From positions 2,914,001-2,978,000 of the forward strand of contig OZ176057.1 of the NCBI GenBank assembly GCA_964247055.1: a DNA stretch of 64,000 nt. The letters run 5' to 3'. The DNA is from Paragordius varius. Taxonomy: Eukaryota > Animalia > Nematomorpha. Shown piece after piece: positions 1-24,334 of this stretch; positions within the stretch are counted from its first letter, which is position 1; each line of letters opens with the position of its first letter. The position numbers and the translations under genes are program-made. The notes beneath the pieces were generated by a model that saw nothing but the letters and a program-made list of their open reading frames with translations, did not search any database and was not told the origin of the DNA.

Positions 1-1172
1 ATAAAAATGGAAAATGCTGGCTTTGTGATCTGTTTCCGGAAAACCGGTAGACACATTCAAATCCAAATGTCAAAAAATATTCATTTCCCGACAATAGCTT
101 CGCCCTTTTTTAAAATTAGGCCCCTTCGGGCCCACCTTGTGTAAAAAACGTTTTTTTGAAAGTCCACAGTCTCTGAGACAATTTTCCGCAAAAGGTGTTG
201 GTCGATTTCAAATATGATTTTTTTACCTTTTCTCGATTGCCCCGAACATAGTGGGTTTACTTTTTTAATTTAGGCTCTCTTTTTACCCTCTTCCCCCGTA
301 AAATGCTATTTTTTTCAAAAAAAACTAAATAATTTTTTGTCGGGTATGAGACCGTTATTCAATGAAGATTCCAGGTATTCCCTATTAAAAGACAAAAATT
401 TTAGCCTTGCGTTTTTTAAATATTGGCTGCTAGGTAAACAGATAGCTGCTAGAACTGCTCTACTATACAGAAATTTCGTTTTTGGAACTAATTTACAGAA
501 AATTTATAAAGCCATATGAGCTTAAAAGCTTACCGTAACTAGGTAAAAATTAAGGTCGGGCTTATCAGCCGTTAATTTGGGGTCTTTATGCCCCCATCAT
601 ATAATTATTTACTGTTGAAGTATTTTTTTGAATAACCCATGAGACGATGGTATCAAAGATAATTCCAAATATTTGCCCTATAAAGGCAAAGAATTTAACT
701 CAGCACTTTTTCCATACTATGGGTAGGGGTTTCCAAAACAGAGACGCCATATAAAATGGCGTAGTTTTGGAGCTAATGTTCAAAAAACTTAAGGAGCCAT
801 ACGAGTTTAGTTAAACACACTGGATAATTTGTATAATATCATTCTCTCCTTTTAAAAGGGATCACAAATGATTTACTTTTTATAACCCTTGATCCCTTCT
901 GTGTGAACACAATTTCAAAATAGAACTTTTAACCATGATTTCGTAAAATAAAAATTTAAAATAAATCCAATGATAGTTGAATACTAACTTTAATAGGGAC
1001 AGTTTAAATATGGTCAATTTCGAGTAAACAATATTTGAGCCTATGCAAAAATTCGGAAAAGAATAATTAAAGACATTTGTTATTAAATATATTTTTTATT
1101 ATTTTTTTATCTTTATTAACTCTATATATTACAAATTATTAGGAATAAGCAAAGCGTAACAGGGCCAGCCAG
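1..1172 (+). mobile_element. Non-autonomous Helitron-like element, copy 1 (5' end just outside the window)
   Basis: Colinear with copies at 9603-10802 and 31257-33735. Starts ATAAAAATGGAAAATGCTGG (a few nt after the family TC start) and ends ...GCGTAACAGGGCCAGCCAG|T (CTAG mutated to CCAG). Confidence 0.7.
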
Positions 1173-1394
1173 TATCTTGGTTAAATTATTCAGAAAATGT
1201 TATAGAAATTTATAAAAAATGTAGATTTATTTTTGTCAATTTCTTAAAACCGAAATAATCCTGATAAATATTATCAACAATATTTCTAAGTGTTATTGCG
1301 AAGAAACTATTATTTTTTTCATATTTGTTGGGGTCGTGAAAGAAACACGCCATCATAAATGGGGTCGGGAACTACAAAAGTTTAATAAGCCCTG
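1173..1394 (+). mobile_element. Right arm of hAT (Charlie-like) MITE enclosing Helitron copy 1
   Basis: Ends AAGTTTAATAAGCCCTG, the reverse complement of the family TIR CAGGGCTTCTTAAACT. Followed by ATCTATAC (nTnTAnAn, hAT target-like). Homologous to 10803-11014 and 29121-29331. Confidence 0.7.
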
Positions 1395-1576
1395 ATCTAT
1401 ACTGTTTATATAATTAAACATATGCATATATTTTATTGTATATTAGGATATTCATGTGACCAACATTGCAACTGTAATAATTTAATCATAATAATATTAG
1501 TTATATTTATAGTAATTAAAACCACATAAAACTAATATATTTTCCAAAACCGTCTTGTTTTTCTAGTATTTAAACC

Positions 1577-1857
1577 CCAAGGATGTCCAATAAAAATGGT
1601 TTTATAGGCCACATTTTAAATCAAAAAATAATAATGGACATTAATAGATAAATATTTTATTAGATTTTAGACCTATATATAAAACCAACAATTTATTTTA
1701 ACATTTTCTCTACAAGTTGATTGTCAAAATTCGGAAAAATTTATCAGAAAATTTGTTCAGAAAATATTTTAGTCTTAGATTTCGTAATGTTATAATTTTT
1801 TTAAATTTTCGCGGGCCAAATGAAGTCTCACACGGTCGCGTATTGATAAACTCTAAT
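1577..1857 (-). mobile_element. Degenerate hAT MITE related to 47610-48650
   Basis: CAAGGATGTCCAA at the left end. The AAATTTTCGCGGGCCAAA and GGCCACATTTTAAATCAAAAA blocks match the reverse complement of the ends of the 47610-48650 element. Confidence 0.35.
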
Positions 1858-4046
1858 CTTACAACAATTTGATGTGAAATCCTTAAATCTAATATCAATG
1901 CAAATCTCCTGTTGTGTGGTATAAACCCGTACAAAAATTTAAAAAAAATTACAATATTTTGTTAATATGATCGGTGAAAAAATCGCTTGAAAGTATACCT
2001 TAAAAACAAATATAATACATTAATTATTCCCAAATATTTATCATACCTATATACAGAGTTATAAAAATGAAATTTAATATTAATTTATAAAATTAATTGA
2101 GAATTATTTGAAAGGTTTGTGAGTGTTTCACTCTTTTATCAAACTGTATATAATAATCCTTGTTGTCATCCGAGAATAATTTTTTGTGTAAAATAAACCT
2201 AGCAAACATTAATTTTAAAGAAAGACAATTATGTTAGGAATTTTTTTTTGAAATCAATTGATTTTAGATATATATAAATATTATAAGATTTTGTAAAAGA
2301 TCAAAAAGGTTATGTAGGGTTAATATTTCAATAACAGAAATTTATACGATAAAAATATACGGACAATTTTTTTTCTAAAATACAACCATACTATGTAAAT
2401 CTCGATTATAACTCGCTGTTTAGAATTGCAAAATATGAATTAGAGATGTATATTGGTAACATAATCAATTATTTATTATGATTGTAATTAAATAATTTAT
2501 TTGGGAAAAATTAAGAAAATTTTGGTTGTCTTTTGAAAAAAAATATTTGCCTATATATTTTTATGTTTTGTCCGTATAATTTTAATTTTACTCTAAATCA
2601 CTAATTATACCCGACATTTGCACAATATAAGGTTAAAAAAATAAAATCACACAAGTTATAATTTTTTATTCACATAATGTACGAAAAAGGGTTGTCTGCA
2701 AATATTTTTGTAAAATTTTTTGTAAAAAATGCAAAAAATTAAATATCCAACTAACGATTGCAAATTAAAAAAATGTTTTAATATCTTATTGGACTTGATC
2801 AATTTTTAACACTTCTGATCTTTTATGTATTGGTGTAGTTTATTTCCCAGTGTTAAATTTAGTAAATAAACTACTTAAAAAATATTTTAGGTTATTTATC
2901 AAATATTGTATTAGTGTATAAGCTGAAAAACTTACATTTTTTAGAGCTTTGTGGCTTCTACAGTTAAAAATTGAAACAGCTCCTAACCCTGAAACTAACA
3001 GCTTTTTATCAATAAATATATCAAGTTTCTGGGATTAAAATTCAATTCAAAAGCTGTTTAAAGTTATTATTTCATTTTCTAACCATATAAATTTACTGTG
3101 GCATTAGCGACATAAATATTAAGGAAAAAGTATTAGAGTATATAGTGAAGTTAGTTTATTGCAATCTTACATTTTTAAAAAGAAGATTTTTTGAATGTGG
3201 CTTAAAGGCGAAAGAAGGCAAATTTAATTTCCGCTAATACCCTAAAACTTTTTAAGATATTTACTGTTAAATCGTTCTGGGATATAAAACTATCCCAAAA
3301 GGTCATGGAGTATTAATATCAACTATCAAAAAATATATTGTCTGAAAAATTCAAGCCAACTCATTTTTTCCCATGATTTTACTATGCGAAAAAAATTTGG
3401 ATTTTACTACGGCTATTCATATATTTTATTTATAAATACTTAATTAAATTAGGACATAATATTTAACAGATTTTGGAGCTAAAATTTTTATAGTTTTTCT
3501 TTGATTTTTTTATGACATAAATATATTTTACATTTACTATATTTAGATCGAAATCGGCGAAGAAATGGTATAAAATAAATATTAAATTTAATTGACTCAT
3601 CATTGTAGAGGCAATTCATTCAATATAATTTCAATATTAAAAAGAAAGCATCTCAAAACCGCAATGGATATTGAAAAAAATTTTACTGCCAAAATTTTGG
3701 ATCAGCAATCGTTTTTTGAAAAAACATTAAAATTGATTTTAAAATCTTGGTTATTTAATTTTAACAATTTAATTTTATGATATTGTTTTTTATATAATCC
3801 AAATTAAATAAGAAAATTAAAAAAAATGGCTTAAAGCCAACCCGTTTAAATAAACAATGGAACTGGAATTAAAACATTTTTTCGCAAAATATGGAAACGC
3901 GGAATCCAAAAATAAAAAATACTAAAACTGTAATCCGACAAATAAAATAAATTCCAGATATATATATATATATATATATTCAATCCCATTTATTTGTTTA
4001 AACATGTGTGTCTTTTTATTTGATAGATGATGATGATAAGGAGGAT

Positions 4047-7000
4047 ATGGGATTGAAGTTTCTCATGACAGTGTTGCATTTTTTGAGTAATATATTACGA
4101 AACATTTATCATTATACCCGATTAAATTTTTTGGCGTCATGTAAAAAAATGAGAATTATCTAAAAATTGTCAGTGGGGCTTTCAAATAAAATTCTTCACA
4201 GACTCCAATTATTTTGAAATTTTTGGGGTTTTTGTATTTTATTGGCCCTAAAATATTTTGACACATTATTTGTAAAAGGTTTGTGGGTCCTGTGGTTTAC
4301 TTACAGGGCATACCTCGAAACCAATCAATAAAGAAGGAATTTTAAGTTTATTTCTGTTTTAGTGTTTGAATTATTTGATCTATAAAAAAAATTAAGGTGT
4401 AAAAACAATATTTTTTGTTGTCCTATTGTAAATAGGGGCCTATTACACCAATTTCATAAGTTATTTAAAAAATCTTATCTGATCATGTAAACTAAATTTA
4501 AGGCGTACAACTAAATAATGGATATAATTTAGACAAAGGCAGCACACGGCCATCAAAATGGCTACCCGTGCGAAATCTTATCCATTACTATCAAAACTAT
4601 GCTCACAAAGTTTTAGCCGAATTCGTGTTTCTTAAACATTTTAACAAATAAGGTCTATAAAATTGACAAGAATTAGATCAAGTTGTCATATTCTGTTAGC
4701 ATTTTACAAAGTTATTGTAACTAATAAAATTATCTTAAATGCTTATATATTTTTATGTGTGGAATATGATATATAGCGGCATGCAATGTCATTTATGTTG
4801 GACACCCCTATTTTATTTACATGTCTTTATATATTTTTATTTTTCTTCCTTTTATATTAGCAATGTTAAATCACCAAAGCCAACCAAGTCCTGGAACAGG
4901 AGGTATGATGTTATTCATTATAGTTTTAATTGTTAAATTTTTATTTAATGTGCCTGATATCTACTTTTTTACGGATCAATATAATTTTCAATCGTATCAG
5001 GTGTTTTGTTTTGCTGTTTAATATTCACCATTTTTTCCATAACAATATGGTCCATCCTTTTATACCACATGGCCCAATCAAAAACCATATTGCACAAATA
5101 TCAAAACTGGACCCAGGACCCCAAAAACCGGTTTTTGGTTTTTCATGAAACTGTTGTTCCATGATAAATAACGGAACCGAAACAATTTTTAAGTTTAAGA
5201 GCCGTTTTAGAACAGGTACCACTTTATTTATAACCGGTTTTAGAACCGATAAAAATGAAAGAAACGAAATCAGTTAGACTTTGAAAATCGTTTTGTACCC
5301 GGTTTCAAATTTAAACTTGGGTTCCACTAAGCACTGATAAATTTATATATTTGGATATTTTTCAAAGCAATTATTTGAAATCATGTTAACTAACCAAGTC
5401 TTTTTCAAACAAAATTGTTTTTTATATACAATCATTTTCTTTTTTAATTATTTTAGTTTTTCGTGTTATAAGCTATTTCATTTTTTCGAATTTATAGTAA
5501 TTTTAAATAATTAAATTTTACGAGAAAAATGTTTAGATACAGTTATAATATCAACGTTTCCATTCATTACTTGGCAACTCAAAACAATTTTAATTTAAAT
5601 ATTATAGTTATAAAAATGTTGTTTTTCCAAATTATATTTTTTAAATTATATAAAAAATTATTTTTTAAGTTTTTTGGAAAAAATATGTGACTATTGATCT
5701 GACTAGAGGAGATAAACTAGTAGTTAACATTCGGCCCTCTAAGACTTTTGTGCGTGAAAGTTTTGGAATCGAATAATTTGTAAAAACATGCGCATATAAT
5801 CTTAGTAAAATTGATAATTTAAAGACATTTTTTTCCAAATTACCAAATAGCAAGAACTAGAAAACATTATTACATTCACTTAATATTTTGCAATCTTATG
5901 TTCAAAATCTGATAAATTTTATAAAAATGCCCATATATATATATATATATATATATATTACCAACTGTTTGAGCTAAGTTGGACATCCCTGACATAAACT
6001 ATTGCACTATAGTTCCTTCATCAAATTAGATTGGATAGTTGCCTAAAACTTATATTAAATTAAATTAAAATAAATCAAATAAAAATCCGAAATCAAACAA
6101 GCATATTAATAATTATCCAATTATTACATTGATAAAAAATAAAAATATCCTAAAGATTGATAATATTTTATGGATTACCTAAAAATTAACAATTATATAT
6201 CGTTTAATGCGTTAATTCTGCTATTAATAAATATATAATTTAAAATTAATTTTTACAAGCCATGGTCGTAAAATAATTTATTTAATCCTAAACACAATAT
6301 GACTAATAATTACTTCACCAATCTTAATTAATATGTTATCGAAATTTGAAAAAAAAATTCACAAAATTTGTTTAAAAAATATAATAAAAGGTCAGAAATA
6401 TTAATTTTTACAAATATTTAGTATATATGTCACATCTTGGAGGGCTGAATGTCGCCTAAAGAGGGATTTTAAAGTACCAGTTTAATGATTTGCATTTTAA
6501 ATGTTTGATATACCATTTACAAATCAAATTCACCCTTAAAAAATTCTTCAATCTTGAACAATTCAAACACACTTTTGAACGATTCAGATTCACCCTCAAA
6601 TAATATATATATATATATATATATATATGTTTAAGATTATAATTTACCCATATTTTTATATATTTTATATTTTTATATTTATAATATGGGAATCATAAGA
6701 ATCCTTTTCTGTATATATTTTTAGGTGTCAATCCTCACAGTGGTTTAGGTGGACATGGCGGCGTCTTTGATATTTTTTCAAGCCGTATATTATCTTATTA
6801 TTTAATTATTAATAGTTTTTATTTTAACAACAATTTATATATTATCTTGTATTATATTACAGTTTTCGGCATGGGTAAGAAAGAAATTTTATATGATATT
6901 TATGTCTTATGATGCAAAAATTTACCAAATAGTACTAAAACACATAATAAGTAATGTGATTAAGTTTAATCAATATTTCAACGAAAATTGCATTATCCTT

Positions 7001-8172
7001 TCTTTTGTGAATCTATTTAGGTCATTCTACCGGCCTTTATAATATCATTCCGAGTAGTATTGACAAAAAGTTTAGGAATAAATATTTTTAGGACATTCTG
7101 CGTAATCGTAAACAATATTTCTAAAATTGTCACTTGCGTCAAAGTCTTTGATAGAAACAATATATTTAGCAAAATTTTTGACACTATACTATGGAGATTG
7201 TATTTAAGTGCATATTTTACAGCGTAGTTAATGAGGGGAAAGGAATAGGGGGTGATGTTCGGGGCAATAGGTGATGAGGAGCTGAAATATTATTAAATTT
7301 TAATTCATTAAAAAATATAATTTAAAAGTTATATTTTAAAATACATAAAAAATCACCTATTTATGAATACGGTTTGAAGTTGTTAATGTTGTATTTAAAT
7401 TGACAGTGGTTGCATGGTGGGGAGACGGTTCCCTCACGGATTCACCCACGGGGCGCAATAAATTCTACCCACGCCTCTAATAGTTTAAACAAACTTTGTT
7501 CTTAAAAAATTTTAATACAAACTTAATTTCACTCTTTTTCTGTTTTGTTTTGTGTTAATACAACAAGCCAATATATTTTTAATAAGGTTAAAAAATGAAA
7601 TATTTTAACTTTAAAAAGTTTGTATACATTTAGCAGCAATTTCTGATTTTCTTATGAACAGCCACTTGGTTCATTCCATTTTTAACTATTATAATTTTGG
7701 TGGCAAAAAGTTGAAAAACTGTAAAATACTTAGATTTTTGATCTAATACCAGCCGCCGATGTTTTATAACTCTATTTTAATTAAAGGTCTTTAAAATAGT
7801 AATTAAATTACTAATGCTACAGCTCTGATACCAAAATCCCAAAATGTTATCGCCTACAAAAAAAAGGGAAAAAAGTGTTACTAAACATTGTCAAATAAAA
7901 TTGCTAACCAGAATTGGTGCCAATATAGCTTTTTTGCTTGGGTTTATTTATATTTCTCACTCTGTAACAGTAAAACTAATTAGTTCTAAAAGTTTAATAT
8001 AAATTTTAGGTAACCCTCATGGTGGTGGGTACGGTGGTCAAAGCAGCTCGAATATCTTTAAATGTATGTATTATTTCACAAATAATTTAAGTTTACACAA
8101 TTTTTAATATATTATTAATTTTTTTATATATTATACTTATATATAGTTATAAGCATGATGGGTAATTATTTT

Positions 8173-8213
<41 letters not shown>

Positions 8214-8968
8214 TATTTTACATACATAAGTTATATTGTGTATAAATCAAATTATTTTTCAGTTTGAAATTTTTTGACTGACATTAAGGGTTTTAAAACA
8301 TACATATAAATAACCATTTACAATTCAAATTTATCCTCGAACAATTCAAATTTACCCTCGAACAATTCAAATTTACCCTAATTCAATTTCATCCAAAATA
8401 TAAATTATGTGTTTTCGGACTTATATCAGTAATTCTTACTACTAAATATCTCATTATTATAATATTAGTTTATTATTTTTTCAGTATTATAGGAAACAAA
8501 ATTTTATTTTTTTAAATTATGGAAAAATAGAGGTAATGTTTTATCTTAAAAACTTATATATTTTAGGATAAAACTAAATTGATAGAGGGTATATTTTTAA
8601 TTGTTTAAGGTCGAATTTGAATTGTTCAAGAGTAAATTTGGTTTTTTTATTGTGACAACATCTATTAAATTTGCATATGATTAAACATTTAACCTGGAAT
8701 TAAATCAAATTATTCGCAAAAACATAAACTATCGACATTAATTTGATTGAGTGTGTTCCACCTTACCCCTTGTATTCCTTTATATTTTGTGAATCAATGA
8801 TAATATTAATTATTACGACATATTATATATATATCTATGTTTATTTTAAAATGCTCTTTTAGGTAAAAAGAAATAATGATATTTAACAAGTAAAGAATTT
8901 TTTTTGAATATATAAAATACTTGAATTTTTTTACGCCATATTTTAATTTTCATTTAGACTGGGAATGA
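4047..8968 (+). CDS. Micro-exon gene: small Gly/His-rich, probably secreted protein (~83 aa)
   Basis: Exons 4047(or 4027)-4086, 4861-4902 (42 nt), 6725-6784 (60), 6863-6874 (12), 7021-7053 (33), 8010-8063 (54), 8958-8968. All introns are GT-AG and phase 1. Spliced frame: MGLKFLMTVLHFLTMLNHQSQPSPGTGGVNPHSGLGGHGGVFDIFSSLFGMGHSTGLYNIIPSNPHGGGYGGQSSSNIFKYWE*. First and last exons are the least certain. Confidence 0.55.
5100..5336. mobile_element. GGAACC/AACCG-rich subterminal region and end of a hAT-type element
   Basis: Repeated AACCG/CGGTT motifs ending in CTAAGCACTG, similar to the TAAGCCCTG end at 35511-35519. Confidence 0.3.
8313..8640. mobile_element. MITE with CCATTTACA TIR and 20-bp subterminal repeats (ACAATTCAAATTTACCCTCG)
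   Basis: Three tandem 20-bp units at 8320-8385 and inverted units at 8590-8640. Same family at ~6513-6600, 16150-16448, 61780-61848 and 62051-62256. Confidence 0.5.
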
Positions 8969-9077
8969 CAATCATTTGAAAAAAAACCTGACCTCTATAT
9001 ATTGCTCATGCACATCACATAATGATTTTGTATAAACATTCGTTGTGTTTTTTTCCTTAATAAATAATGTCATCTTA

Positions 9078-9112
<35 letters not shown>

Positions 9113-9118
<6 letters not shown>

Positions 9119-9270
9119 AATCTCAGGCTGCTACCAGCCCGAGGAAGTCCTTTGAACTTGTTGGGAGGGCAAATATGTAGCCTTTATAGGTGTATGCCCT
9201 CATAATTTTGGCAAAAAATAGCCTCAGAAACATATTATTAGCGGTTTTAAGGGTATAAAGGCCAAAAGTA
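9113..9270 (-). mobile_element. Isolated Helitron-type 3' end (alternative terminus family)
   Basis: CGTAAATCTCAGGCTGCTACCAGCCCGAGGAAGTCC is a diverged copy of the hairpin terminus at 20085-20148. Confidence 0.4.
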
Positions 9271-9426
9271 CAACAAATTAAACAATGTTAACAAAAAATA
9301 TTTATTCAACAATGATCTTGTAAAAAAATAAGCAATTATTGGGTGAAAGCAAAAAAAACTTTATTTTTGACATCAGGTTACAAATAATAAAAAAGACATG
9401 TTTAATATTGTCCTTATGGTGTAAAG

Positions 9427-11014
9427 AAGCGCTTCTTAAACTATGGGTCGCGACCCCATTTGGGGTCGCGAGTGAAGAAAATACAATTTAACAAAAAATT
9501 TATAACTTGTAAAGTTATTGTTATAAAGAAAATCATCGTAGATAAATATATCTAAAATCTTCTGGTTCGAAAAGACTGTCTATGCCAGCATTTCTATTAT
9601 GATCATTATAATATATATATTTATAAAAATGGAAAATGCTGGGTTTATGATCTGTTTCCGGAAAACCGTTAGACCCATTCAAATCCAAATGTTGGAAGAT
9701 GTCATCATTTATAAATGCTCCGACAATAGCTTTGTCCTTTTTTTGAATTAGGCTCCCAGTTCGGGCCCAGCCTGTGAAAAACGAGTTTTTCAAATATGAT
9801 TATTTTTACTTTTTTTCGATTGCGCCGAACCTAGTCGGCTTATTTTTTAATTTAAGCTCTCTTTTTCCCCGTTCCCCCCATAAAATGCCATTTTTTCAAA
9901 AAAACGAAATAATTTTTGGCCAGGGTATGAGACCGTTAAATTCACTGAGGATTCGAGTTATTCTCTGTTAAAAGGCAAAAATTTTAGTCTTGCGTTTTTT
10001 TTAATATTGGCTGCTGGGTAAACAGATAGCCGCTAAAACTGCGCCACTATATAGAAATTACGTTGTTTTGGAGCTAATTTACAGAAAATTTTTGAAACCA
10101 TATGAGCTCATAAATAGCTTAAAATATTACTTGTAATTAGGTAAAAACTAAGGTCGGGTTTTTTATTAGACTTTAATTTGAGACCTTTATGCCCTAAAAC
10201 GCCATCATATAACGATTATTTAGTGTTGAAGTATTTTTCCGAATCCATGAGACGATAATCTCAAAGATGATTCCAAATGTTTGCCGTATAAAGGCAAAGA
10301 ATTTAATTCAGCCCTCTTTCCATATAGGTCTATGGGTAGGGGTCTACCGGTTTAAAACTGAGACGCCACACAAAATAGGCGTAGCTTTGGAGCTAATTTT
10401 TAAAAAACCTAAGAATCATACGAGTTCAGTTAACATTTCTGGGAAATTTATATAATAACATTCTTTCCTTTAAAAAGAGACCACAAATGATTTACTATTT
10501 ATATCCCTTGATCCCAGCTGTATGAACACAATTTCAAATTAGAACTTATACCCATGATTTCGTAACGCAAATCCTAAAATAAATCCAATGATAGTTGAAA
10601 ACTTTAATAAGGGACAGATTAAATATGGTCGATTTCGAGTATACAATATTTCAGCCTTAGCAAAAATCCGAAGAATAAATAAAAATATTCATTATAAAAT
10701 ATGTTTATTATTATTTTTATCTCCATTAACTCTAATTATTGCAAGCTAAAGAATAATTATCGGTGAGACTACGCCACACCGAAGCGTGACAAGGCCAGCT
10801 AGTATCATTAACTATAATGTTAAAGAAATTTATAAAAAATGTAGATTTATTTTGTCAATCTCTTAAAACCGAAATAACCCTGATAAATATTATCAACAAC
10901 ATTTCTAAGTTTTATTTTGAATAAACTATTATTTTTCTTTTATATTTGTTGGGGTCGTTAAGAAACTCGCAATCATAAATGGGGTCGGGAACTACAAAAG
11001 TTTAAGAAGCCCTG
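9427..11014 (+). mobile_element. Composite hAT MITE carrying a Helitron, with perfect 8-bp TSD
   Basis: TIRs AAGCGCTTCTTAAACT...AGTTTAAGAAGCCCTG. GTGTAAAG is duplicated at 9419-9426 and 11015-11022. Subterminal GGGTCGCGACCCC palindrome typical of Charlie-like hAT MITEs. Confidence 0.85.
9603..10802 (+). mobile_element. Non-autonomous Helitron-like element, copy 2 (nested in hAT MITE)
   Basis: A|TC 5' end followed by TATATTTATAAAAATGG. 3' end GGCCAGCTAG|T. No TSD. Confidence 0.8.
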
Positions 11015-11184
11015 GTGTAAAGAGGTTTGACTTACACACATTTGTAAAATTCCTATATATAATATATATATATTAATGCATAACCTGTGATGCAGTTGAT
11101 CACTGTAATGAATGTAATATGTCCTTATGGATTAGGTATATATGGCTTAAATTGGAATATCCTAATTAAAATAGCTTAACCTTT

Positions 11185-12755
11185 TTTCAGGGCGTAAATC
11201 TTTACTTAGCGACTTATTGAATAACCTCCTATACTAAAATATTTGTTTTTTAAGGGGTAATAAATATTTTAGGTCCTTATTGAACTCACATAGTCTCATA
11301 GTTTTTCTGAAATTTGGCTCCAAGGGCATGCTGTATCGATATAGGGACTAAGTTTTTGGGGGGTAGCCCACTAACCAAGGGCGAAACAAAACGGTGGAAT
11401 AAAATTTTTGGCTTAATTTGGGTAATACCTAGAATCATGATTGATTTCATATGCTCTCGTGGGATTTTAGAAAAATTGCCTCAAAACCAAAAATTCAACC
11501 TATGGTGGCGCATTTTTTGGGGCATAAAGGCCCCAAAACGGCTAATAAAAAAAGGCTGACCTTAATTTTTACCTAATTACGGGTATTTCAAACTTTAATG
11601 AGCTCATATGGATTCATAAATTTGTCCAAAACAACGCAGTTTCTATATAGTGGCGCATTTGGCGGATAGCTCCTTACTAAGGGGTAGGTATAAAGAAAGC
11701 GTTGGGTAAAACTTTTGCCTTTATATGAAAAACATCTGGAATTATCATGAATTCCATATGTTCCTATAAGTTCTTAGAAATATTGCTTCAAAATTAAAAA
11801 ATGTTCTATGGCAGCGCATTTTTCAGGTCGTAAAGGTAAAACGGCTAATTTGAAAAAACCGCTGACTAAAATTTTTGCCTCTTTACGGTTAATATTTCAG
11901 GCTCTTATTAAACTTATATGTGATAAGTTTTCTGAAAATTAACTCCTAAACAACGCAATTTCGATATGGTGGCGCAGTTTTAGGTACAAAAGAAGCGCTT
12001 GATTAAAATTTTTGCCTTTTTACGGAGAATACCTGGAATTATGATTGATTCCATATTCTCTCATTAGTTTTTGGAAAAATTGCCTCAAAACTGAAAACTC
12101 ATTCTATGGTGGCGCATTTTTCAGGGCGTGAAGGGAATTAACGACTGATTTTAAAAAACCTGACGTAAATTTTTGGTATATTTTAAGCACCTATTTAACT
12201 CATATGGCCTGATAGGTTTTCTGAAATTTAGCCCCAATGGCACGCTATTTCAATATGACGCCGCAGTTTTTAGCGGGTATCTGTTTACCCAGCAGTTAAT
12301 ATAAAAAAATGCACGACTAATTTTGCCTTTTAACAGGGATTACCTGGAATCTTCATTAAATTTTTACAGTCTCATACCTTGGGCGAAAATTAGATTTAAA
12401 AAATTATTTTTGTGGAATTGGTTTTTTGAAAAAATGCATTTTACGGGGGTAGCGGGTAAAAAAGGCGAGCCGACTATGTTTGGCGCAATTGAAAAAAAGT
12501 AAAAAAAATTATATTTGAAATCAAATGGTCCAGCACGTTTTCCTGAAAATTGTCTCAAAGACACGAAAAAAACTGTTTTTACACGGTGTGGGCTCGAATT
12601 GGGGGCCTATTACAAAAAAGAGCCAATCTATTGTCTAAGCATTCATTAATCATTATATTTTTTCGACATTTGGATTTGAATGGGTTAATCGGTTTTCCGG
12701 AAACTGATCACAACGCCAGGATTTTCCATTTATATATATATATAAATATACATGA
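11185..12755 (-). mobile_element. Non-autonomous Helitron-like element, copy 3 (3'-truncated)
   Basis: Reverse-complement match to the family 5' end at 12700-12755 (A|TC). Several internal ~155/310-bp repeat units. No CTAG end found; left boundary is approximate. Confidence 0.7.
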
Positions 12756-13637
12756 TATTATATTACATGATTAAATAAATTTTAGTTTGAATAAAGCAAA
12801 GACATTTAATTGAGAAGATACAATCAAACACATTGATTTCAGATTTATTAATTTTTGACTTAATAAAACTTGGCATAAGTAGGGATATTATAGACACAAA
12901 GGTATATAAAGGTCGAAACACATACGTATGGAGTAAAACAATATTAGTCCATAAAAGAATAAAAAATGTTATTTTAAAAGACAAGGGGATATTATGGATA
13001 TGTATACAACTAGGCTTGTTTTTTTAAAAAAAACATTTTTTTATTCTTTTTTGCACTAATATTGTTTTATGCCATACACTACTGTAATGCAAATCTGTTC
13101 TATAAATAAATATTTAAATAAAATTCTATATGTTAATTATAATAGACGTAACTGGAAGGATGTAATTATTATTGTACTTCGAAAATTAATATTATAAAAA
13201 TATTAAATTTATTTATAAACGCCTAAAACATTTATTGATTAATAATCATGGAGATTATATCGTGACGGAATTTCTAATTTATTCCAGTTTTAGGACAATA
13301 AAATAATATTAAATTTAATAGATATTCTGTGACCTTCGAAAAATGTGAAATGTGGGCCACTTTTTAAGCTATATATGGGCTTCGCATTAAATTAATCAAA
13401 GTGTTGTACACCCTTGAGACTTCATTTTTGTGAGTTTTTGGGGTATAAATATTTACCCGAGACCTAAAGGTAGTAATCAAATTTCTGTTTAAAAAGTTGT
13501 TTTATTTAAAACTTAATTGTTATAAAACTCTCTTATTCTATATCAAATAAAAATAACTTATTATTTACAGTCTTTTGAATTCTAGAGCATATTATAGTAG
13601 CCTTAAAACAAGATTAAAACGAGCAGCTGATACCCAA

Positions 13638-16600
13638 ATGGATAATAAATATTTGCTGGTATATTGTAATTCAAAAGAGAAAGTTAATTATTTACTTTCC
13701 AACCATTAATCATTTGCTTATTGTATTAACAATTGAAGATTTAAAGAAATAAAGAGTGGAAATAAGTTTGAGAGAAGATTTTTTTATTACATTTTTAAAA
13801 AAAATTCCTTTGCATCATGTGCCTAAAAGGCTAAAAAAACATATTTTTAATTTTGGCCCATGGTAAAAATATTTTTCAAGATATTTAAATTTTGAATGTT
13901 CCTGGGATATAAAACTACCCCAAAAGGTCATGAATTGTTAAAATGATGTATGAAAATTATGTTTCGATTAATAATATTGAATGTTTTCTATATTTTTATA
14001 GATACTGATAAATATTTGAAATGATGGCAGATATTAAAAATCGCGATATTTTTAGAGCTAAAATAGCACTTTTATTTTTGGAATTATTTAAAGTAAAGTC
14101 CTGCATTATCGTTAGCATTTTCTTCTAAACCTGCTATTAATTACAAACTCCCAATGTTATCTACTAAAAGTAATATCATTTTGGTGTGGCTTCAATGGTA
14201 GATTTTATTAAATTTTTTATCACTCATTAAACCCTTAAAATTATTTCATTTTCAACATATGGCCCATAAATTCCCCCACATTCCATTATTCAGCTAAATC
14301 ACTTAACTAATCATTAACGGCTATACCAATTAAATCATTTTATATACATTTTTTAGGTTTCACTCCATATAAAATGAGAACCAATAAAAAAATTATTTCA
14401 CCCAATATGGTCCTAGCTTAGCGTTAAGGAAAAGATATGCCCACATTTTTATATTTACTAAACATTTACGCGTCCATTCTTATTCGCAAAATTTCAAGGT
14501 TCAGTTGAAGGCTTAATCAAGATTTTTGCGTTAAAATTAATCTAAATTGTAAAAATTTAAGGCGCTTTAATGAGGAATATTTTAGGTGCCGAAAATAATA
14601 TTTTATTCCGAACAAATTATCGTTTTGACCAACTCTTTTTATAAATTAATTATTTGACAAAAACTATTTTGGCATTGGTGTATTAGTTAAAAAAAAAAAA
14701 TATTTGAATGGCGTTGTACGTTTTTTTAAAATGTATCTTAAAGCCAACATATAATATTTTTTAATGTGTATACAATAATGATAAACTTTATTAGCATATA
14801 TTATTGATATACATAAAATGGAAAATTGAAAAGAATTAATTTTAAATACAATATTAAACTTGAATAGATTTCAAGGTTAATATGTTTTTCATGAATTATA
14901 ATTACAATATTTTAACATTAAACAATTACCTATATACGTATATATGTATATATATAATATATATATTATAAAATAATTTTATGTAAATTGTAAAATATAT
15001 ATAAGTTCCAAAGCACAGAGAATGAGAGGGTTAATTGATTTGGACGACCCTATGATGACACTCAAAAATTTTTATATAAGGGTGCAAAAAAAAGATTAGT
15101 CTACATTTTAATTTTATCGCACTCGATTTTATAATCCCCCACCACCACATATCAATATGAATTTGTTTGGAAAAGGATTATTAATGGTAAATTGTTTTGA
15201 TTAAATGTTTCATAAAATAGATGGCATAATTATTTTGTATGTAAAATTATTTATTATTTATAAGGATTAAATTTTATTAAATTTATTTTCTAAGAAATAA
15301 TAGTGTAGAACATGGCCAAGTAAAAAAAATAAATAACAAATTAAATAATCAGACCATATTTTTTTGAGATAAATAATGATTTCTACCAATTGCCTGCTCA
15401 GGGCTGACAGTGATGAATTGTACTTAATGTACAATAATTTTTGACACCCTTTGTCACCTTTATTGTAATTTAAGTTAAAAGTTAACCTCTCCATTCTTAT
15501 TACACATAAAATATTTTGTTTTAAAGCGCTACCCATAATAAACATTGTTGAATAGCCGATCTCAAACTCCAAATGATAGTTTCATATCCCCCCTAATTTT
15601 ATACCAAAATTCCAACTTTATCAATGATTTTGTAATCTAATAAAATTGGGTCAGTAATAAAAAAAGTTTCACACATATTGTGATTAAAAATTGGAACCGA
15701 TCGGAATAATAATTTTGATTATTAAGATCCCGGCATTTTTTGTTCCAAGTTAGAGCTATTCACCTACGGTTTCTCACAAAAGAAGTTTTGATTCTTACAA
15801 TAATTCCGATTCCTTTAATACGCAAAATATTACAAATTTTTATATCATTGCCGTGTCGAATAAATTAAATATAGTAAAAGGTAAACGAAAATTGAATAAC
15901 ATTTCTCTTAGAACGCTCCTTCCAACTAAAATTAAATTCAAAATGCATCTTAGTGCTAGTCTTTAACAGCCAATTCATATAATTACGTTGTGGCACTTTA
16001 TTAGCGTGAAGGGCCATATAAATGAGCAGACTCATATAGCTTAAAATTGGAAAATTAACCAGCTATGTGGCTCACAAACTTTAAAACTGAGAAAAAAACT
16101 ATGAGGAAAATATGCATTCGCCAAAGTTTTTTGTTAGGAATTATATATACCATTTATAATTCAAATTCACCCTAGAACAATTCAAATTCCTTAAACAATT
16201 CAAATTTACCCTCAAATAAAATATTTATTTTTTAAGATTAAAAATTACCTATGTTTTTAAAAATAAAATATTTTGTTTTAAATAAAATTAATATTGAAAA
16301 ATATTAAACTAAGCCATAAAGATATATTTCATATTAATAATGAGTTATATTAGTTTGAATATACATAATTTATTTTTAGGGTGAATTTTAGCGTTTGAAT
16401 TGTACGAGGGTAAATTTGAATTGTTGAAGGGTGAAGAACTGTAAATGGCATACATTGCCACATTCAAAGAGGCGAATTTAAATCGTCTAACTGACCCAAA
16501 TGTAAATTTAGTTATGTTGAAATGATATATTTTTTAGCTATATCAATTAAAATATTTAAAGCATTTCAATAATTCGATAATGATATATTTAAATACTGCT

Positions 16601-18784
16601 TCTTTCCTTTAAAATTATATGATATATATATAGCAGTTTCCAATCCCTAAAAATTTTCAAAAGGCCAAAAAAATATTTTTTGTCTAAAGTCCATAATACC
16701 GATAAAATTTTAACGCTGTATGACATATTTGCATATAATTATGCCCAAAACACAATATATGTATTACTTGTCTATGGGAAAGCGCTTCTAGGTCCGCGGT
16801 TTAGGTATCACTAACTCTCTCTATGTATATATAAATATATATACCGTTTTTTCATCTAAAGCAACTTTTTTTTAACCAAACGCAACATTTTTTCAAGTAA
16901 ACGCAGCATTTTTAGTTCTGTTTTATGTAAAATGTTGTGTTTACAGCAAAATATTTGCTTATCGTTGAAAACAGGTTGTCTTTACTTAATTAAATGTTGC
17001 GTTTGGTTGTGTTATCTTTTAAGATAAAGGGATAATATAAGTAATGTGAAATGAACTGAACTATTTATTTGGTTTTTTAAGGTGTATATATAGCAATTTT
17101 AACTGTCCATGATTTACATTATATCAATAAAATTTCAAGTAACAAAGGTTATATATTTACATATAACACAAAAAATATAAAAAATAATACAATTCAAATA
17201 ACGGTGAAAGTTATGATATGTATTTCACATTTGCATGTAACACAGAAAAATATGATATAAAAATAAAGTATATCTTTCAGATTTGCATAACATCACTTCC
17301 CCCTTAAGAGAACCCGACCGGCTTCCGCCGAATTCTCTCGGGGTAACGACGCTCGTGCGGATTTTCATTTATATTGTCATTAATGCTATTGTTATTATTA
17401 TCAATAATGTTACCATTAATATTAGTGTTATTGTCGTGATCATTATCATTACTATTGTTTGAGTGACCGGTGTCGTGGGTGTGTCGACGAATCTTAGTTT
17501 GAAAGATAACATCTCATGTTATGTGTGTCGACGTGTTTCATTTGATCTCTGCCTGCCACCCTAGACCATTCCTTTGAAACTGGTCCAGGCGCACTAATAT
17601 ACTATGGGCGCTGTAACGAATCTAAACAGTGTCCTTTTGTAACTGACACATCCTCTTATTGTTGAAATCGTCGAGGTGTAGCTTTAACTCGGCCTGGGGA
17701 GGTAGGCGTCTTACCGATCAATCTTATTACAAGTTTGTCCGCGCCAATCTTACTTACCCATCCATCAATTGTTGAATGATGTGGGAGTCCTCCCCAGCCA
17801 TTTGTTGATAATGATTTCAAAGTTTCTATAGATTATTAGCCCGTTCGCTTTCAGTGCAATGGCGGTTGAACATTTTTTTGGATCTACATTAGCGAAGTGG
17901 TTGGGTTTTCCACATTTGCAATTGCGGTTCCAGGCGGGACATTTGTTTGGCCCATGAACACTCCCATAACCCTTGCGCGAATGTGTCAGAGGTTGATTGT
18001 TGTGATCGAAAAATTATTACCATTGTTCTAATTGGTATTATCATTAAATTTTTTACTGGACATGCTGGTAATATTGGCAATTGACATTGTCATGGTTGTG
18101 GAACTTTGGACTCTAACTCCCTATCCGAGTTTGGAACCCGGAGGTTCCACTGTTGTGTTAGATTAGTTGTTAGATTAGTTCGATACTCGTCTTGGCCACC
18201 AGTTGTTATCTTTTAAGATAAGGGGATAATATAAGTAATGTGAAATGAACTGAACTATTTATTTGGTTTTTTAAGGTGTATATATAGCAATTTTAACTGT
18301 CCATGATTTGCATTATATCAATAAAATTTCAAGTAACAAAGGTTATATATTTACATATAACACAAAAAATATAAAAAATAATACAATTCAAATAACGGTG
18401 AAAGTTATGATATGTATTTCACATTTGCATGTAACACAGAAAAATATGATATAAAAATAAAGTATATCTTTCAGATTTGCATAACAGGTTGAAACAGTGT
18501 GTTGTTTTTATTGACTGAAAAATGGTATATATATAATTTATTAGCTTATGGTTGTCATTTTGGCCGTCAACATGTTCAAGAGTTACAGTGCCGAGGAAGA
18601 GGAGGATGACGAGCAATATCGCGGGGATTTTAATCGACAAGTGCGTTATGAAAGGACAGGCGATGGGTTTAACCGACAGGTCCGATATGACAGGGGTAGT
18701 AGATATAGAAATGAAAGATACGGTGGAATTGATGGTCGACAACGATATGGTGGCCAACGTTATGGGCGCTATGATCGACTTTAA
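13638..18784 (+). CDS. Small secreted prepropeptide-like protein with repeated FNRQVRY / RY motifs (86 aa)
   Basis: Exon 13638-13658 (caaATGG context, donor GTATAT) joins in phase 0 to exon 18545-18784 (acceptor TTATTAG). This gives a signal-peptide-like MDNKYLLLMVVILAVNMFKSYSA, an acidic spacer EEEEDDE, two FNRQVRY(E/D)R repeats and further RY motifs. The exon-1 assignment is inferred. Confidence 0.6.
16150..16448. mobile_element. MITE with CCATTTA(C/T)A TIRs and 20-bp subterminal repeats
   Basis: TA|CCATTTATAATTCAAATTCACCCT ... AGGGTGAAGAACTGTAAATGG; inverted arrays of the 20-bp unit. Confidence 0.6.
16844..18525. mobile_element. Small TA-flanked palindromic MITE interrupted by the LTR element
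   Basis: TA|CCGTTTTTTCA ... TGAAAAATGG|TA ends. Internal inverted AAACGCAACATTT / AAATGTTGCGTTT motifs. About 200 bp once the LTR insertion is removed. Confidence 0.5.
17010..18486 (-). mobile_element. Young non-autonomous LTR retrotransposon (TRIM-like deletion derivative of a Gypsy-type element)
   Basis: 283-bp TG...CA LTRs at 17010-17292 and 18204-18486 with one mismatch seen. 5-bp TSD GGTTG. PPT AAGGGGGAAG abuts the left LTR and a PBS TGGTGGCCAAGACG abuts the right LTR. Internal gag zinc-knuckle remnant (CPAWNRNC-KCGKPNHF) and pol tail (ERIRRKP). Confidence 0.9.
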
Positions 18785-19387
18785 GCTACAAAAACTCTAC
18801 ACATCCGACTAGCTTACACACTTTTTTTGGATGAATACACAAATTATAAACAATTAAACTTGATGATTACACTTGAGTATATGTCTTAAATATAAATGTA
18901 TATAAATGGAATTAATAATATATTTTTGATTTTACGTAATAAGTGAACACGCTGACACTTACAAGTGTATTTATACGGACTAATAAAATATTTCTTGGTT
19001 GAAATGTACATGAGTATTATGTCAATCTTTTCTAGTAAAAATATATGGTAAAAATTTAATATTTTTGAGCAAACTCTTAATAGTATAATGAAGGCGTATT
19101 AAACAAAAAATCTTCCCCCCCCCTTAAAAAAATGTTATCTGGTAGTTTAATTGTTGAAATGTTTAGCCTCCATTAAAATTTAATTTTCTCTAACATAACA
19201 AACTATCAATCGTTATTATATTGACATATAGTTATAAAAATTTGTCAAGATATAAGTATTTATAAGGAACTCACATATGGTCACAATGCAAAAATAATTA
19301 TTATTGATAAAATTCAAAAAAATTATTATAACACAAAATGAGACACGGAAATAGTTAAGAGGTTAATCCATCTCTATCTAATTTTAT

Positions 19388-22300
19388 TTATTGATATTCC
19401 AAATTTTTTTTCACTACTCCGTGTTGGTGTCCCTTCAATAGATTTGCACGTATTTTCTTTCGATGATTTCTTACATCATATTGGGCACTTTTTGGTTCTA
19501 AATCGATGGAAGTTGTTAAATTGTATACTTCTAATGAAAGTCTTGATGGAACATTTTTCAAATTTTCATTATTATCTCTATTATTATTATATTTACTGGT
19601 TGTGGCATCATTGTAAAATTCCTTATTAAATGCATCATTTTTGTCATTTATATTTTCTTTATTTTGAAAGTTTGGAGGTAATTCGGCATTGTTTTCCACA
19701 TTTTTGCTCCTTAGATCTCCGTTATCTACAAAAGATGTAATTATTATTTTGTAAAATAGCAGAAATATAAAAATAATAACTCTTGGCTTAAAATAACCAA
19801 ATTAATAATATTGTAAATTTTTTTAATGTCAGTCAAATGGAAATTAATTTAAAAAGATTTATAGGTTAAATCGGATCGATTATGGTTAATAGAATATTTC
19901 GGGTTGTTTAATACGTTTAATATTATTAATTATAGGCTATGCATACATATTTTGACGGATGAATAGAAAAAGAAAACGACATACATACTTAACAAGTTGT
20001 ATGATAAAACACAACGAAGTCTTAAGTTTTAAACTAATGGTTAAAGTCGAAAAAAAAACTTTGGGAAGAAATTTTATAAAACAACTAACGTAAATCTCGT
20101 GCTGCTACGCAGCACGAGGAAGTCCTTCGGACCTCTGGGGGGGCTAAAAATTATTTTTGTGGATTTTGTTTTTGAAAAAAATGGCATTTTACGGGGGTAG
20201 CGGGTAAAAACAGGGCCTATATCAAAAAAGTGAGTCGACTATGTTCGGCGCGATCAAAAATAAGTAAACAAAAATCGTATTTGAATTTGAATGGTCCAAC
20301 ACGTTCTCCGAAAAATTGTCTCAAAGACATGATTTCTGTGCTTCTGTTTTCAAAAAAAACCCGTTTTTTACACGGGGTGGGCCCGAACTGGGGGCCTAAA
20401 TTAAAAAAAAGGGCAAAGCTATTGTAGGGACATTTATTAATGATTATATTTTTTCGATATTTGGATTTAATTGGGTTCACCGGTTTTCCGGAAGCAGATC
20501 ACAAAGATACATGAGGAATCAGTTTTTAGCGGGTAACTCCTTATCCAGCAGCTATCATCAAAGAAACGCTTAAATAAAATTTTTGCCTTTTAACAGGGAA
20601 TACGTGGAATCCATATTGAATTTTTAAGGTCTCATACCTAGGGCGAAAAATAGATTTAAAAAATTATTTTTGTGGATTGTTTTTTGAAAAACATGGCATT
20701 TTACGGGGGGAGCGGGTAAAAAGAGGGCCTAAATTAAAAAAGCGAGACGACTATGTTCGGCGCAATCGAAAATAAGCAACAAAAATCATATTTGAAATTG
20801 AATGGTCCAACACGTTCTCCGGAAAATTGTCTCAAAGACACAAATTGTGTGGACTTCTGTTTTAAAAAAACGCGTTTTTTACACAGAGTGGGCCCGAACC
20901 GGGGGCCTATTTTAAAAAAAGGGCGAAGCTATTGTCGAGGCATTCATTTATGATTATATTTTTTCGATATTTGGATTTGAAAAGGTCTACCGGTTTTCCG
21001 GTAAAAGATCACAAAACTCAGCTATCATCAAAGAAACGCTTGACTAAAATTTTTGCCTTTTAACAGGGAATACGTGGAATCCATATTGAATTTTTAAGGT
21101 CTCATACTTAGGGTGAAAAATAGATTTAAAATTTTTGTGGACTTTGTTTTTTGAAAAAAATGGCATTTTACGGGGGGAGCGGGTAAAAAGAGGGCCTAAA
21201 TCAAAAAAGCGAGACGACTATGTTCGGTGCAATCGAAAATAAGTAACAAAAATCATATTTGAAATTGAATGGTCCAACACGTTCTCCGGAAAATTGTCTC
21301 AAAGGCACAATTTTTGTGGACTTCTGTTTTCAAAAAAAACCGTTTTTCACACGGGGTGGGCCCGAACTGGGGGCCTATTCCAAAAAAGGGCGAAGCTATT
21401 GTCAAGGCATTTATTAATGATTATATTTTTTCGAAATTTGGATTTGAATGGGTCTACCGGTTTTCCGGTACCAGATCACAAACGCGGCATTTTCCATTTT
21501 TATAAATATATAGATGATACCCTACAAACCTGGCACACCCTTCAAAAGCAGGCTCAAAACTATATATGATGATCTTACTGAGGCCAAACTAAAAATAGAA
21601 GATGCAGAAAATAGAAACAATTGGAAAGTGCAAAAAAACTTATCTCAAATCAGCTACCTTTAACTCTGAAGATCGACAGCTTTGATGATAATAATATATA
21701 TATATATATAGTGTCTATGGTAAATTACTTGATATTAAAGGTATTTATAATTTTGTGGCTGGAATAGCATCTATATACTTATATACATATAATATCGAGC
21801 ATTATTAAAGGCATCTCTATTCATGGTAGCTTATGAGATTTATGATTTTAGTTTCATTTTTGAAAATTTTGTATAATGGCTTAATTAATTATAAAAATTT
21901 TACATGGCAAGAGGCATATAGTTCTCATATATAACTACTGACATGTATGTTCTTTTTAGCCATTTTAATTACAACAGAGCCCTGTAATAATGCTTGTTAC
22001 TGATTAATATACATATTAATATAATATATATATATATATCACTGTGTGCAAAAAAAGAGGATTTTGATTTAACGAAAAACTTTTTTTTTCATGAGATAGC
22101 TTATAACCAGCGTATTCAATTGCCGCAAAAATTTTTATTTGTTGCCAACCTAGTTTTTGAAATATTGAGAGAAAATCGAAATCGGGCAAAATGTGAAAAT
22201 TAAGGATAATTCAAAAAATAATTATAAAATTTGAAATATTATGGTTTATTATCATTTTAGGAGATATTTTTAATGATAGCCTAAAATCATATAGTTGGGG

Positions 22301-24291
22301 TTTCTATTAAATTATAGGTCAAAAGATGGCGTTTTTCTTATATCACACTTAAAAGATAAAATAAAATTTAATGAAACTATATTAAAATAATTTTTTTTAA
22401 TTATTTACTACCTAAGCTCACTATTAAAATCTTAACATTCTTATTTTAATTAGTAAAATAAACTTTTTTATCAAAATAAAACCAAAAATATTGTTTTTTA
22501 TTTTTTCACATTTTTGTTATCTATAAAAAATTTATACTGTTTTATTTTGGATTCTCACATGATTAGGAATTATTAAAAATATAATTTATGCAAAATAGGA
22601 TATAAAAGTAGTGGAATATCAACCAAAAAATCCTTACAATTTCCTGTAACAAGTCTGTTTTATGACAAATTAATATTTGTAATGGGATTTGTATGGACTG
22701 TTGGTTGATATTCCACTAATTTTCAATCCTATTTTGCATAAATTATATACTTAATAATTCCTAATCATGTGAGAATCCAAAATAAAACACAATAAATTTT
22801 TTATACATTCATAAACCAGATGACAAAAAATGCAAAAATAAAAAACAATATTTTTGGTTTTATTTTGATTTAGAAGTTTATTTTACTGAATAAAATATAA
22901 TTGTTAAGATTTTAATAGTGAATTTAGGTAGTAAATAATTAAAAAAAAATATTTGAATATAGTTGCATTAAATTTATTTTGCCTTTTAGGTATGATAAAA
23001 GAAAAACGCCATCTTTTGATCTGAAATTTTATAGAAATCCTAACTATATAATTCTAGGCTATTTATATATTGAAAATATCTCCTAAAATAATAATAAACC
23101 ATAATATTTCAAATTTTATTATTGTTTTTTGAATTATCCTTAATTTTCACTTTTTGCCCGATTTCGATTTTCTCTCAATATTTCAAAAACTATGTTGTCA
23201 ACAAATAAAAATTTTTTCATTAAAATTTTTTTTGCACACAATGTATATATATATGTACCATAAAAACTTGGTGAAACATCTAATTTCAAGTTTTCTTTAT
23301 CTTCATCACCGACATAATAGTTGGCATCATTATTTTTTCTATAGTTGTTGGGGTAATAACGATGTTTATTGCTATCATAGGCGTTTGAGTCATCAAAAAT
23401 TTCAACGTTTTTGGGATATTTTGAAAAATGACATTTGCAAACTATGCAGCTGTTTTGGTCGCGTTCATAAATTAGTTGTTGTTGTGTTTTACATGTGGGA
23501 CATTGTCGTTCTTTGCATTGGGGTGGTTGGTCAACTAAATAAATTATATTGTGAAAATTGGAATTCGTTCGTACATAGTTAAATCTAAACAATTTTAACA
23601 ATCGATATCTTGTATATTTAGTTATGAAGATTTACGAAAAATCAAATATATATATCTAAAAAAATCATTATCGTTCAATATTAAATATATACTAATGTTA
23701 TTAAAACCGTTTGATTGCTTTTACTGTTTGATGGATTGGATTTCAAAAATCATTTGCAATTTTGTTAGTAGGTTTTTTTCGAAAAAAGGTTTTAAAATAT
23801 TTTTAATTGAAACTAAATTTTATTTACATTGTTAACTTAACAATTTAAATTAAATTTCATTTGTTTGAGGGTAATAAATATTCTGTTTACTTTACAAAGT
23901 TAAGATAAAATTGTATATTAAATGAAACAAATTAAAATCCGTTTCTCTTAGAATTGTTTCCTACATTTTTTGGGACCAATATCAAAAATATTTAAATCGT
24001 GCAGCACTTGATAACTTAATAACAACGGGTTAATATGGAATGTTAAGCACCGTATCGCTCATTTATGACCAAAGTATCGGATAAAAATCAAGTTAAAGTT
24101 ATTAAAATATTCTCAATAAATATTGAAAAGTGTTTTGTAAAAACCGCAATGACATCCCAGGATACATCCCTGATCACTTCGATCATATATGGCATATTGA
24201 CAATCTTGACAAACAACAGGCTCTGGACCTTGTAAAACACACCGAAATAGATTGGTTTTGCTATCACGCTTCACTGATTTATCCAAATACA
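19388..24291 (-). CDS. Protein with two antistasin-like Cys-rich domains and an Asn-rich tail (5' exon not found)
   Basis: Exons 24145-24291 (147 nt), 23259-23534 (276 nt) and 19388-19725, all phase-1 GT-AG. They encode CVLQGPEPVVCQDCQYAIYDRSDQGCILGCHC and CKERQCPTCKTQQQLIYERDQNSCIVCKC, matching the antistasin pattern C..C-x2-C..(Y/F)-x2-D-x-N-G-C-x2-C-x-C. Confidence 0.7.
20085..21514 (-). mobile_element. Chimeric Helitron-like element, copy 4 (triplicated 5' block, alternative 3' end)
   Basis: A|TCTATATATTTATAAAAATGG at 21514. Three tandem ~470-510-bp copies of the family 5' block. Ends in a perfect 10-bp hairpin (20096-20118) followed by TTAG|T. Confidence 0.75.
21516..21695 (+). mobile_element. 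3' fragment of an RTE-like LINE
   Basis: Translates PGTPFKSRLKTIYDDLTEAKLKIEDAENRNNWK, resembling the RTE C-terminal ..ED(A)xDRxxW motif, followed by a TGA/TAA-type tail. Confidence 0.5.
22040..23243. mobile_element. Foldback / long-TIR Tc1-mariner-type non-autonomous element
   Basis: CACTGTGTGCAAAAAAA...TTTTTTTGCACACAATG ends in (TA)n. The two ~590-bp arms are imperfect inverted repeats around a short spacer near 22650. Confidence 0.85.
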
Positions 24292-24334
24292 CTAATATAT
24301 TGTTTAAGATTTTGATGACGAGTTTTTGTATTTA

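Follow-up and report, generated by a model that had tools for sequence, protein, structure and literature searches.

A stretch of 64,000 nucleotides (nt) of Paragordius varius DNA, hereafter called the window, appears to contain on its plus strand a real, single-copy and lineage-restricted gene of ~4.1 kb, which would encode a small secreted peptide in short, frame-neutral exons. We assign this reading a probability of roughly three in four. The genome assembly comprises 110.5 Mb in 44 contigs. Both the genome and the window have a guanine plus cytosine (GC) content of ~25–27%, and the window carries open reading frames (ORFs) of long interspersed nuclear element (LINE) and long terminal repeat (LTR) retroelements. 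In the proposed gene, a first exon reaching from ATG 4821 to position 4902 would supply a signal peptide, and four internal exons of 60, 12, 33, and 54 nt, followed by a very short terminal coding piece, would complete a precursor of ~84 residues. The presence of a hidden, spliced gene for a small and probably secreted protein, whose internal exons are exclusively symmetric and in phase 1, is well supported by sequence statistics. What the sequence shows directly are exon-like segments of unusual statistics, a module shared by two of them, and a hydrophobic N-terminus, while splicing, secretion, and function are inferred.

An earlier note on this DNA had proposed a micro-exon gene at this site and listed its exons. 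All of the listed segments are indeed preceded by AG and followed by GT, have lengths that are multiples of three (60, 39, 42, 60, 12, 33, and 54 nt), and are open in intron phase 1. ORF calling is nearly blind to the gene, as had been stated: among ORFs of at least 60 amino acids (aa), only the 66-aa ORF at 4821–5021 coincides with an exon, namely the 42-nt one, which it encloses. The joined frame is Gly/His-rich, with exon translations rich in Gly, His, and Ser. Any subset of the exons keeps the frame without producing a stop at a junction: a terminal T is found in exon 8010–8063 alone, and whatever can follow it begins with GT or AC. The junction codons encode Gly (G/GT, the slash marking the split) at 4902/6725, Leu at 6784/6863, Gly at 6874/7021, and Ser at 7053/8010. 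Since phase-1-open AG..GTR segments are common (1372 on both strands of the window), this phase and splice-edge structure alone proves little.

Stronger evidence came from base composition. For the 9089 AG..GTR segments of 30–120 nt on both strands of the window, the GC content of each segment was compared with that of its 40-nt flanks. By this contrast, the segments 6725–6784, 4861–4902, and 8010–8063 ranked 21st, 27th, and 29th, respectively, with an exon GC of 0.45–0.47 and a flank GC of 0.14–0.15. The three segments are collinear on one strand, lie within 3.2 kb, and are phase-compatible. The 60-nt segment at 4027–4086, which had been suggested as the 5′ exon, did not stand out (859th of 9089; GC 0.35), and the composition of the 39-nt candidate at 4307–4345 is unrelated to that of the other exons.

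The 60- and 54-nt exons resemble each other. Both start with NPH-(S/G)-G, and to this extent the repeated NPH(S/G)G-GG motif described earlier was recovered, but the repeat is loose (NPHSG-L-GG versus NPHGG-GY-GG) and the strict pattern matches only once. A DNA pattern for N-P-H-[S/G]-G had 10 sites in the 110-Mb genome, compared with 14 for the reversed control, and two of the 10 sites are the starts of these two exons, located 1282 nt apart on the plus strand. Shuffling with composition preserved rarely made the two exon peptides this similar (p = 0.004), whereas the flanks of the exons align only as AT-rich filler. This combination points to diverged copies derived from an old exon duplication, of which only the exon sequence would still be similar. 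The peptide of the 33-nt exon was not significantly similar to the other exons in the shuffle comparison.

The two shortest exons were assessed with a filter (GC ≥0.36, GTR donor, pyrimidine tract ≥0.65) that left six loci in 12 kb of the plus strand, four of which are candidate exons. Between the 60- and 54-nt exons (6785–8009), ~0.27 such loci were expected by chance and two were seen, namely the 12- and 33-nt exons, a count that lends both of these putative exons moderate support. The earlier description of exons as short as 12 nt applies to one segment with good splice sites, but such a segment cannot be validated alone: short phase-1-open AG..GT segments arise by chance at ~5 per kb. When segments were scored as chains, the 5-kb tile 4001–9000 (plus strand, phase 1) ranked 11th among 360 tile/phase combinations (top 3%) and was the third distinct locus in the window. 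The splice sites resemble those of introns recovered from an mtHSP70-like housekeeping gene of the same genome (donors GTATAT, GTAATG, and GTATGC; acceptors TTTAG, ATTAG, and TATAG). This housekeeping gene has mixed intron phases, and an all-phase-1 layout is therefore not the default of the genome.

The 5′ end given in the earlier note is probably wrong, and the first coding exon is probably 4821–4902. Upstream of the 42-nt exon, its frame continues without a stop as far as ATG 4821. Translation from this ATG would give an N-terminus with a strongly hydrophobic core of 13 residues (best 10-residue Kyte-Doolittle mean 2.97), Ala as residue 14, and a polar mature part thereafter. Judged by hydropathy alone, this N-terminus is signal-peptide-like. 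A start at ATG 4047 yields a best 10-residue mean of 1.72, and the hydrophobic N-terminus noted earlier is better read from ATG 4821 than from exon 4027–4086. We moderately favor ATG 4821 over ATG 4047, which we take for the less likely start. If translation starts at ATG 4821, the exons at 4027 and 4307 become unnecessary; exon 4027–4086 is needed only if acceptor 4860 is used.

The composition of the product was computed from the translated exons together with the junction codons, and relatives were searched for exon by exon. The mature product of ~70 residues would consist of ~23% Gly, 14% Ser, and 7% each of His, Asn, and Pro, with one Asp, one to four Lys, a few Phe and Tyr, and no Glu or Arg. 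No Cys occurs in the exon translations, and the last junction can add one at most. A single GGGYGG string occurs in exon 8010–8063, and there is no regular repeat. The product is predicted to be a disordered, mildly cationic Gly/Ser/His-rich peptide, and its composition alone makes a defence-type or a matrix/adhesive glycine-rich peptide the most likely function. Such peptides are known from other invertebrates: NLP, CNC, and GRSP of C. elegans are glycine- and tyrosine-rich secreted defence peptides (PMC2453101), and armadillidin is a glycine-rich, His-containing defence peptide (PMC5031766). The putative product shares with them a small precursor with a predicted signal peptide, a Gly-rich, low-complexity and mildly cationic mature part with His and Tyr, and GGYGG-like strings. 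Nematodes are the sister phylum of Nematomorpha. Unlike the NLP/CNC peptides, the product lacks regular YGGYG-type repeats, and its exons are too short for alignment, the likeness being one of composition only. A matrix or adhesive role would suit this composition nearly as well as a defensive one.

Several observations weigh against a gene of this structure. The model is known from the DNA sequence alone, and the earlier note sought phase 1-1 chains specifically, so that the uniform phase partly reflects what was selected for. Other GC-rich peaks occur in the introns (~17 GC peaks in these 5 kb, most of them not exons), and a GC peak alone thus does not make an exon. At the 5′ end, acceptor 4860 would find an excellent polypyrimidine tract in the very T-rich stretch that is taken here for a signal peptide, and of the two start codons ATG 4047 stands in the better Kozak-like context. 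More than one 3′ end is conceivable, since at least four acceptors (8263, 8485, 8863, and 8958) each give one to four residues before a stop. The end chosen earlier (acceptor 8958, stop 8966–8968) is one usable solution, but no sequence feature picks it over its rivals. As a further alternative, the donor at 8064 may be ignored, with read-through to a stop at 8105–8107. Paralogous exons, for which the earlier note had suggested a search, did not appear: in protein searches of the whole genome, the peptides of the 60- and 54-nt exons matched only themselves, even at E ≤ 10. Nothing of 41–131 aa in a collection of 5.8 billion protein clusters shared even three 5-residue words with the 75-aa open frame that spans the 60- and 12-nt exons. 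Exact look-up likewise failed to find five long ORFs of the window in this collection, and the genome may therefore not be represented there. No Pfam match was obtained for the open frames of the gene, nor for any non-transposon ORF of the window, which leaves no conserved anchor gene for synteny. As judged from these searches, the predicted gene is a singleton orphan with no detectable relatives. A search of window positions 1–14000 against Rfam returned nothing, and a scan for bacterial promoters and terminators, irrelevant for a eukaryote, stayed at shuffle level.

These points also bear on the possibility that no functional gene exists at this site and that the segments are either open AG..GT stretches lined up by chance in AT-rich DNA full of repeats, or what is left of a decayed gene or pseudogene whose expression has ceased. 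Phase-1-open AG..GTR segments at a density of ~10 per kb over both strands, the many GC peaks outside exons, the ambiguity of both start and end, and the lack of relatives in the genome and of a transcript-derived protein in the collection would all be consistent with this view. It is difficult to reconcile with three main exons that fall within the top 0.3% for GC contrast while being collinear and phase-compatible, and with an NPH-Gly module shared between two exons, which is unlikely to occur by chance. In addition, all frames are intact and the good candidate signal peptide lies exactly in frame. We consider the absence of a functional gene unlikely, and the coordinates of the preferred gene model and its alternatives are listed in Table 1.

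Table 1 Features of the predicted short-exon gene and its surroundings (window coordinates).
Feature	Position	Strand	Remarks
Preferred first coding exon	4821..4902	+	82 nt; ATG 4821; signal-peptide-like N-terminus, then start of mature peptide; phase-1 donor GTATGA at 4903; contains 4861–4902
Alternative 5′ exon of the earlier note	4027..4086	+	ATG 4047; good Kozak-like context; moderately hydrophobic 13 residues; donor GTAATA; weak
39-nt candidate exon	4307..4345	+	Unsupported: GC 0.33, Lys/Glu-type; DNA unique, which argues neither way
60-nt phase 1-1 exon	6725..6784	+	First copy of NPH-Gly...IF module; only the phase-1 frame is open
12-nt phase 1-1 micro-exon	6863..6874	+	Sites TTACAG and GTAAGA; same open frame as 60-nt exon across 78-nt intron
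33-nt phase 1-1 micro-exon	7021..7053	+	Ends N-I-I-x just before donor, in the register of N-I-F-x in exon 8010–8063
54-nt phase 1-1 exon	8010..8063	+	Second copy of NPH-Gly...IF module
Candidate terminal coding piece	8863..8877	+	Cys-Lys-Lys-Lys-stop; one of several
Possible poly(A) signal, first AATAAA downstream of last exon candidates	9059..9064	+	
Intronic copy of abundant non-coding ~330-nt repeat (MITE-like)	8290..8650	.	Internal 21-nt tandem repeat

The exclusive use of phase 1 can be explained by the way in which such a gene may have arisen. With acceptor 8863 as the last one, the model has five introns, and at four of them a codon is divided just before GT (G/GT twice, A/GT, and T/GT). 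Two of these codons encode Gly, and the position matches the AG/GT proto-splice context. An exon has to be symmetric for duplication, because otherwise the frame breaks. Splits ahead of GT together with a duplicated exon would thus suffice for the uniform phase, and no selection for exon skipping is needed. Hence, in our view, the uniform phase 1 is a side effect of how the gene originated; it permits skipping but does not indicate a mechanism for generating variants.

The architecture had been likened to that of the micro-exon genes (MEGs) of schistosomes. S. mansoni MEGs possess 10–20 symmetric exons of 6–81 bp, mostly 15 bp, as well as introns of 0.1–5 kb and a signal peptide (bioRxiv 10.1101/2023.06.21.545858), and the symmetry of their exons allows variants by alternative splicing (PMC4350168). 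The likeness extends to a first exon with a (here predicted) signal peptide, to symmetric internal exons, all four of which fall within 6–81 bp, to long, repeat-bearing introns (78–1822 nt in the proposed gene), to a small secreted product (here predicted) without homologues, and to invisibility to ORF finders. However, the locus is a mild case. It has six exons in all, and its four internal exons of 12–60 nt include two ordinary short ones (54–60 nt), so that only the 12- and 33-nt exons are true micro-exons and exons of ≤36 nt account for 45 of ~255 coding nt. Also unlike MEGs, the gene is single copy and belongs to another phylum. There is no sequence relation to MEGs, which are families specific to Schistosomatidae; the exons have no homologue in the genome, the protein collection, or Pfam. 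No treatment of micro-exon genes in Nematomorpha was found in the literature searched, where the single paper mentioning both deals with flatworm phylogeny.

A more far-reaching suggestion was that the symmetric phase-1 exons would be skipped in combinations, generating a pool of Gly/His-rich peptides secreted at the interface with the host or the environment. The symmetry of all internal exons, the absence of junction stops in any exon subset, the signal-peptide-like first exon, the long introns, a 78-nt intron between the 60- and 12-nt exons that is itself open in frame, and the fast-evolving or orphan character of the gene would fit such a diversification system, and symmetry is what lets MEGs vary according to the literature cited above (PMC4350168). 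The same symmetry is, however, accounted for by splits ahead of GT and exon duplication. Moreover, there are only four internal exons, with two of them ≤36 nt, and no tandem family exists, so the 16 possible isoforms of a single copy would form a small repertoire. We regard a MEG-like diversification gene as improbable and prefer a small secreted-peptide gene with frame-neutral exons.

A similar comparison can be made with the bicycle genes of aphids, whose numerous small internal exons begin, with few exceptions, at codon position 2, corresponding to intron phase 1, and which average ~17 exons with a stated family minimum of five (PMC9168663). The predicted gene resembles them in its secreted-protein type (here predicted), its short exons, its phase-1 internal exons, and its being missed by annotation; bicycle genes evolve fast. 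Its exon number lies at the family minimum of five, and all of its internal exons are in phase 1. Bicycle products reportedly carry paired Cys-Tyr-Cys motifs, a description ascribed to Korgaonkar et al. in 2021. In contrast, the product predicted here has at most one Cys and no Cys-Tyr-Cys motif, its host is not a hemipteran, and it is not a member of the family by sequence. It is also improbable that Nematomorpha independently evolved a MEG- or bicycle-like system of phase-1 secreted-protein genes, of which this locus would be a minimal member with four cassette exons and up to 16 Gly/His-rich variants directed against host or microbes.

If real, the locus is a small orphan secreted-peptide gene of a kind that standard gene finders would miss. 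The design of short exons in the same phase behind a signal peptide has so far been described in blood flukes, aphids, and aphid relatives, and the locus would mark the mild end of this spectrum. It illustrates how exon duplication and codon splits before GT may give rise to such layouts, with no splicing-based variation needed. The locus is also a short and easy target for reverse transcription PCR on the question of whether exon skipping occurs in this lineage.

The introns of the predicted gene and its immediate surroundings contain several repeats. The ~330-nt repeat, which resembles miniature inverted-repeat transposable elements (MITEs), occurs in >40 copies with 72–80% identity on many contigs. 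In addition to the full intronic copy at 8290–8650, a partial inverted copy is located at 6505–6670, within an earlier long intron of the gene. A low-copy dispersed repeat (six other copies, 70–79% identity) lies at 4565–4752 within what would be intron 1 of the earlier model. The 956-nt intron 7054–8009 comprises two GC-rich blocks at 7213–7293 and 7387–7490 (up to 0.70 GC in 40 nt), and in this region the minus strand has good splice-like edges (TTTCAG and GTAAAA) at 7221–7281.

When symmetric phase-1 AG..GT segments were chained across the window, the top score fell elsewhere, on the minus strand at 17000–25000. This chain consists of 9–12 segments and includes a Cys-rich 153-aa ORF at 23140–23601; it may represent another hidden short-exon gene. 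On the plus strand, positions 18548–18784 form the terminal exon of a gene with FNRQVRY repeats, which is Gly/Tyr/Arg-rich and has RYGG-type strings. A continuation of the predicted gene into this downstream gene was considered, but no phase-1 exon chain links the two, which may still be related.

Beyond the window, the assembly of 110.5 Mb is considerably smaller than the 200–300 Mb given in a preprint for all nematomorph genomes studied, and it represents either an unusually small genome or a partial set. HSP70 marks the organism as an animal but, being 84–87% identical to proteins of many phyla, places it no further. A segment of the nuclear contig C2 (8694586–8696490) matches the mitochondrial ND-type family PF00361, with TGA stops inside, and has probably been copied into the nucleus from mitochondrial DNA. 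Contig C44, the mitochondrial one (15,693 nt, 30% GC, with COX1), contains many long perfect palindromes with arms of up to 208 nt and no spacer. Read in the invertebrate mitochondrial code 5, several of them fall within long open frames (e.g. L023:5104-5519, 1431-2021, and 5513-6293). A published account reports coding palindromes for the mitochondrial genomes of Nematomorpha (PMC6649704), and the palindromes of C44 agree with this and independently support a horsehair worm as the source, with the small assembly size as a caveat. Furthermore, the mitochondrial sequence carries at 6749–7451 an array of 49–52-nt hairpins spaced by 72 nt.

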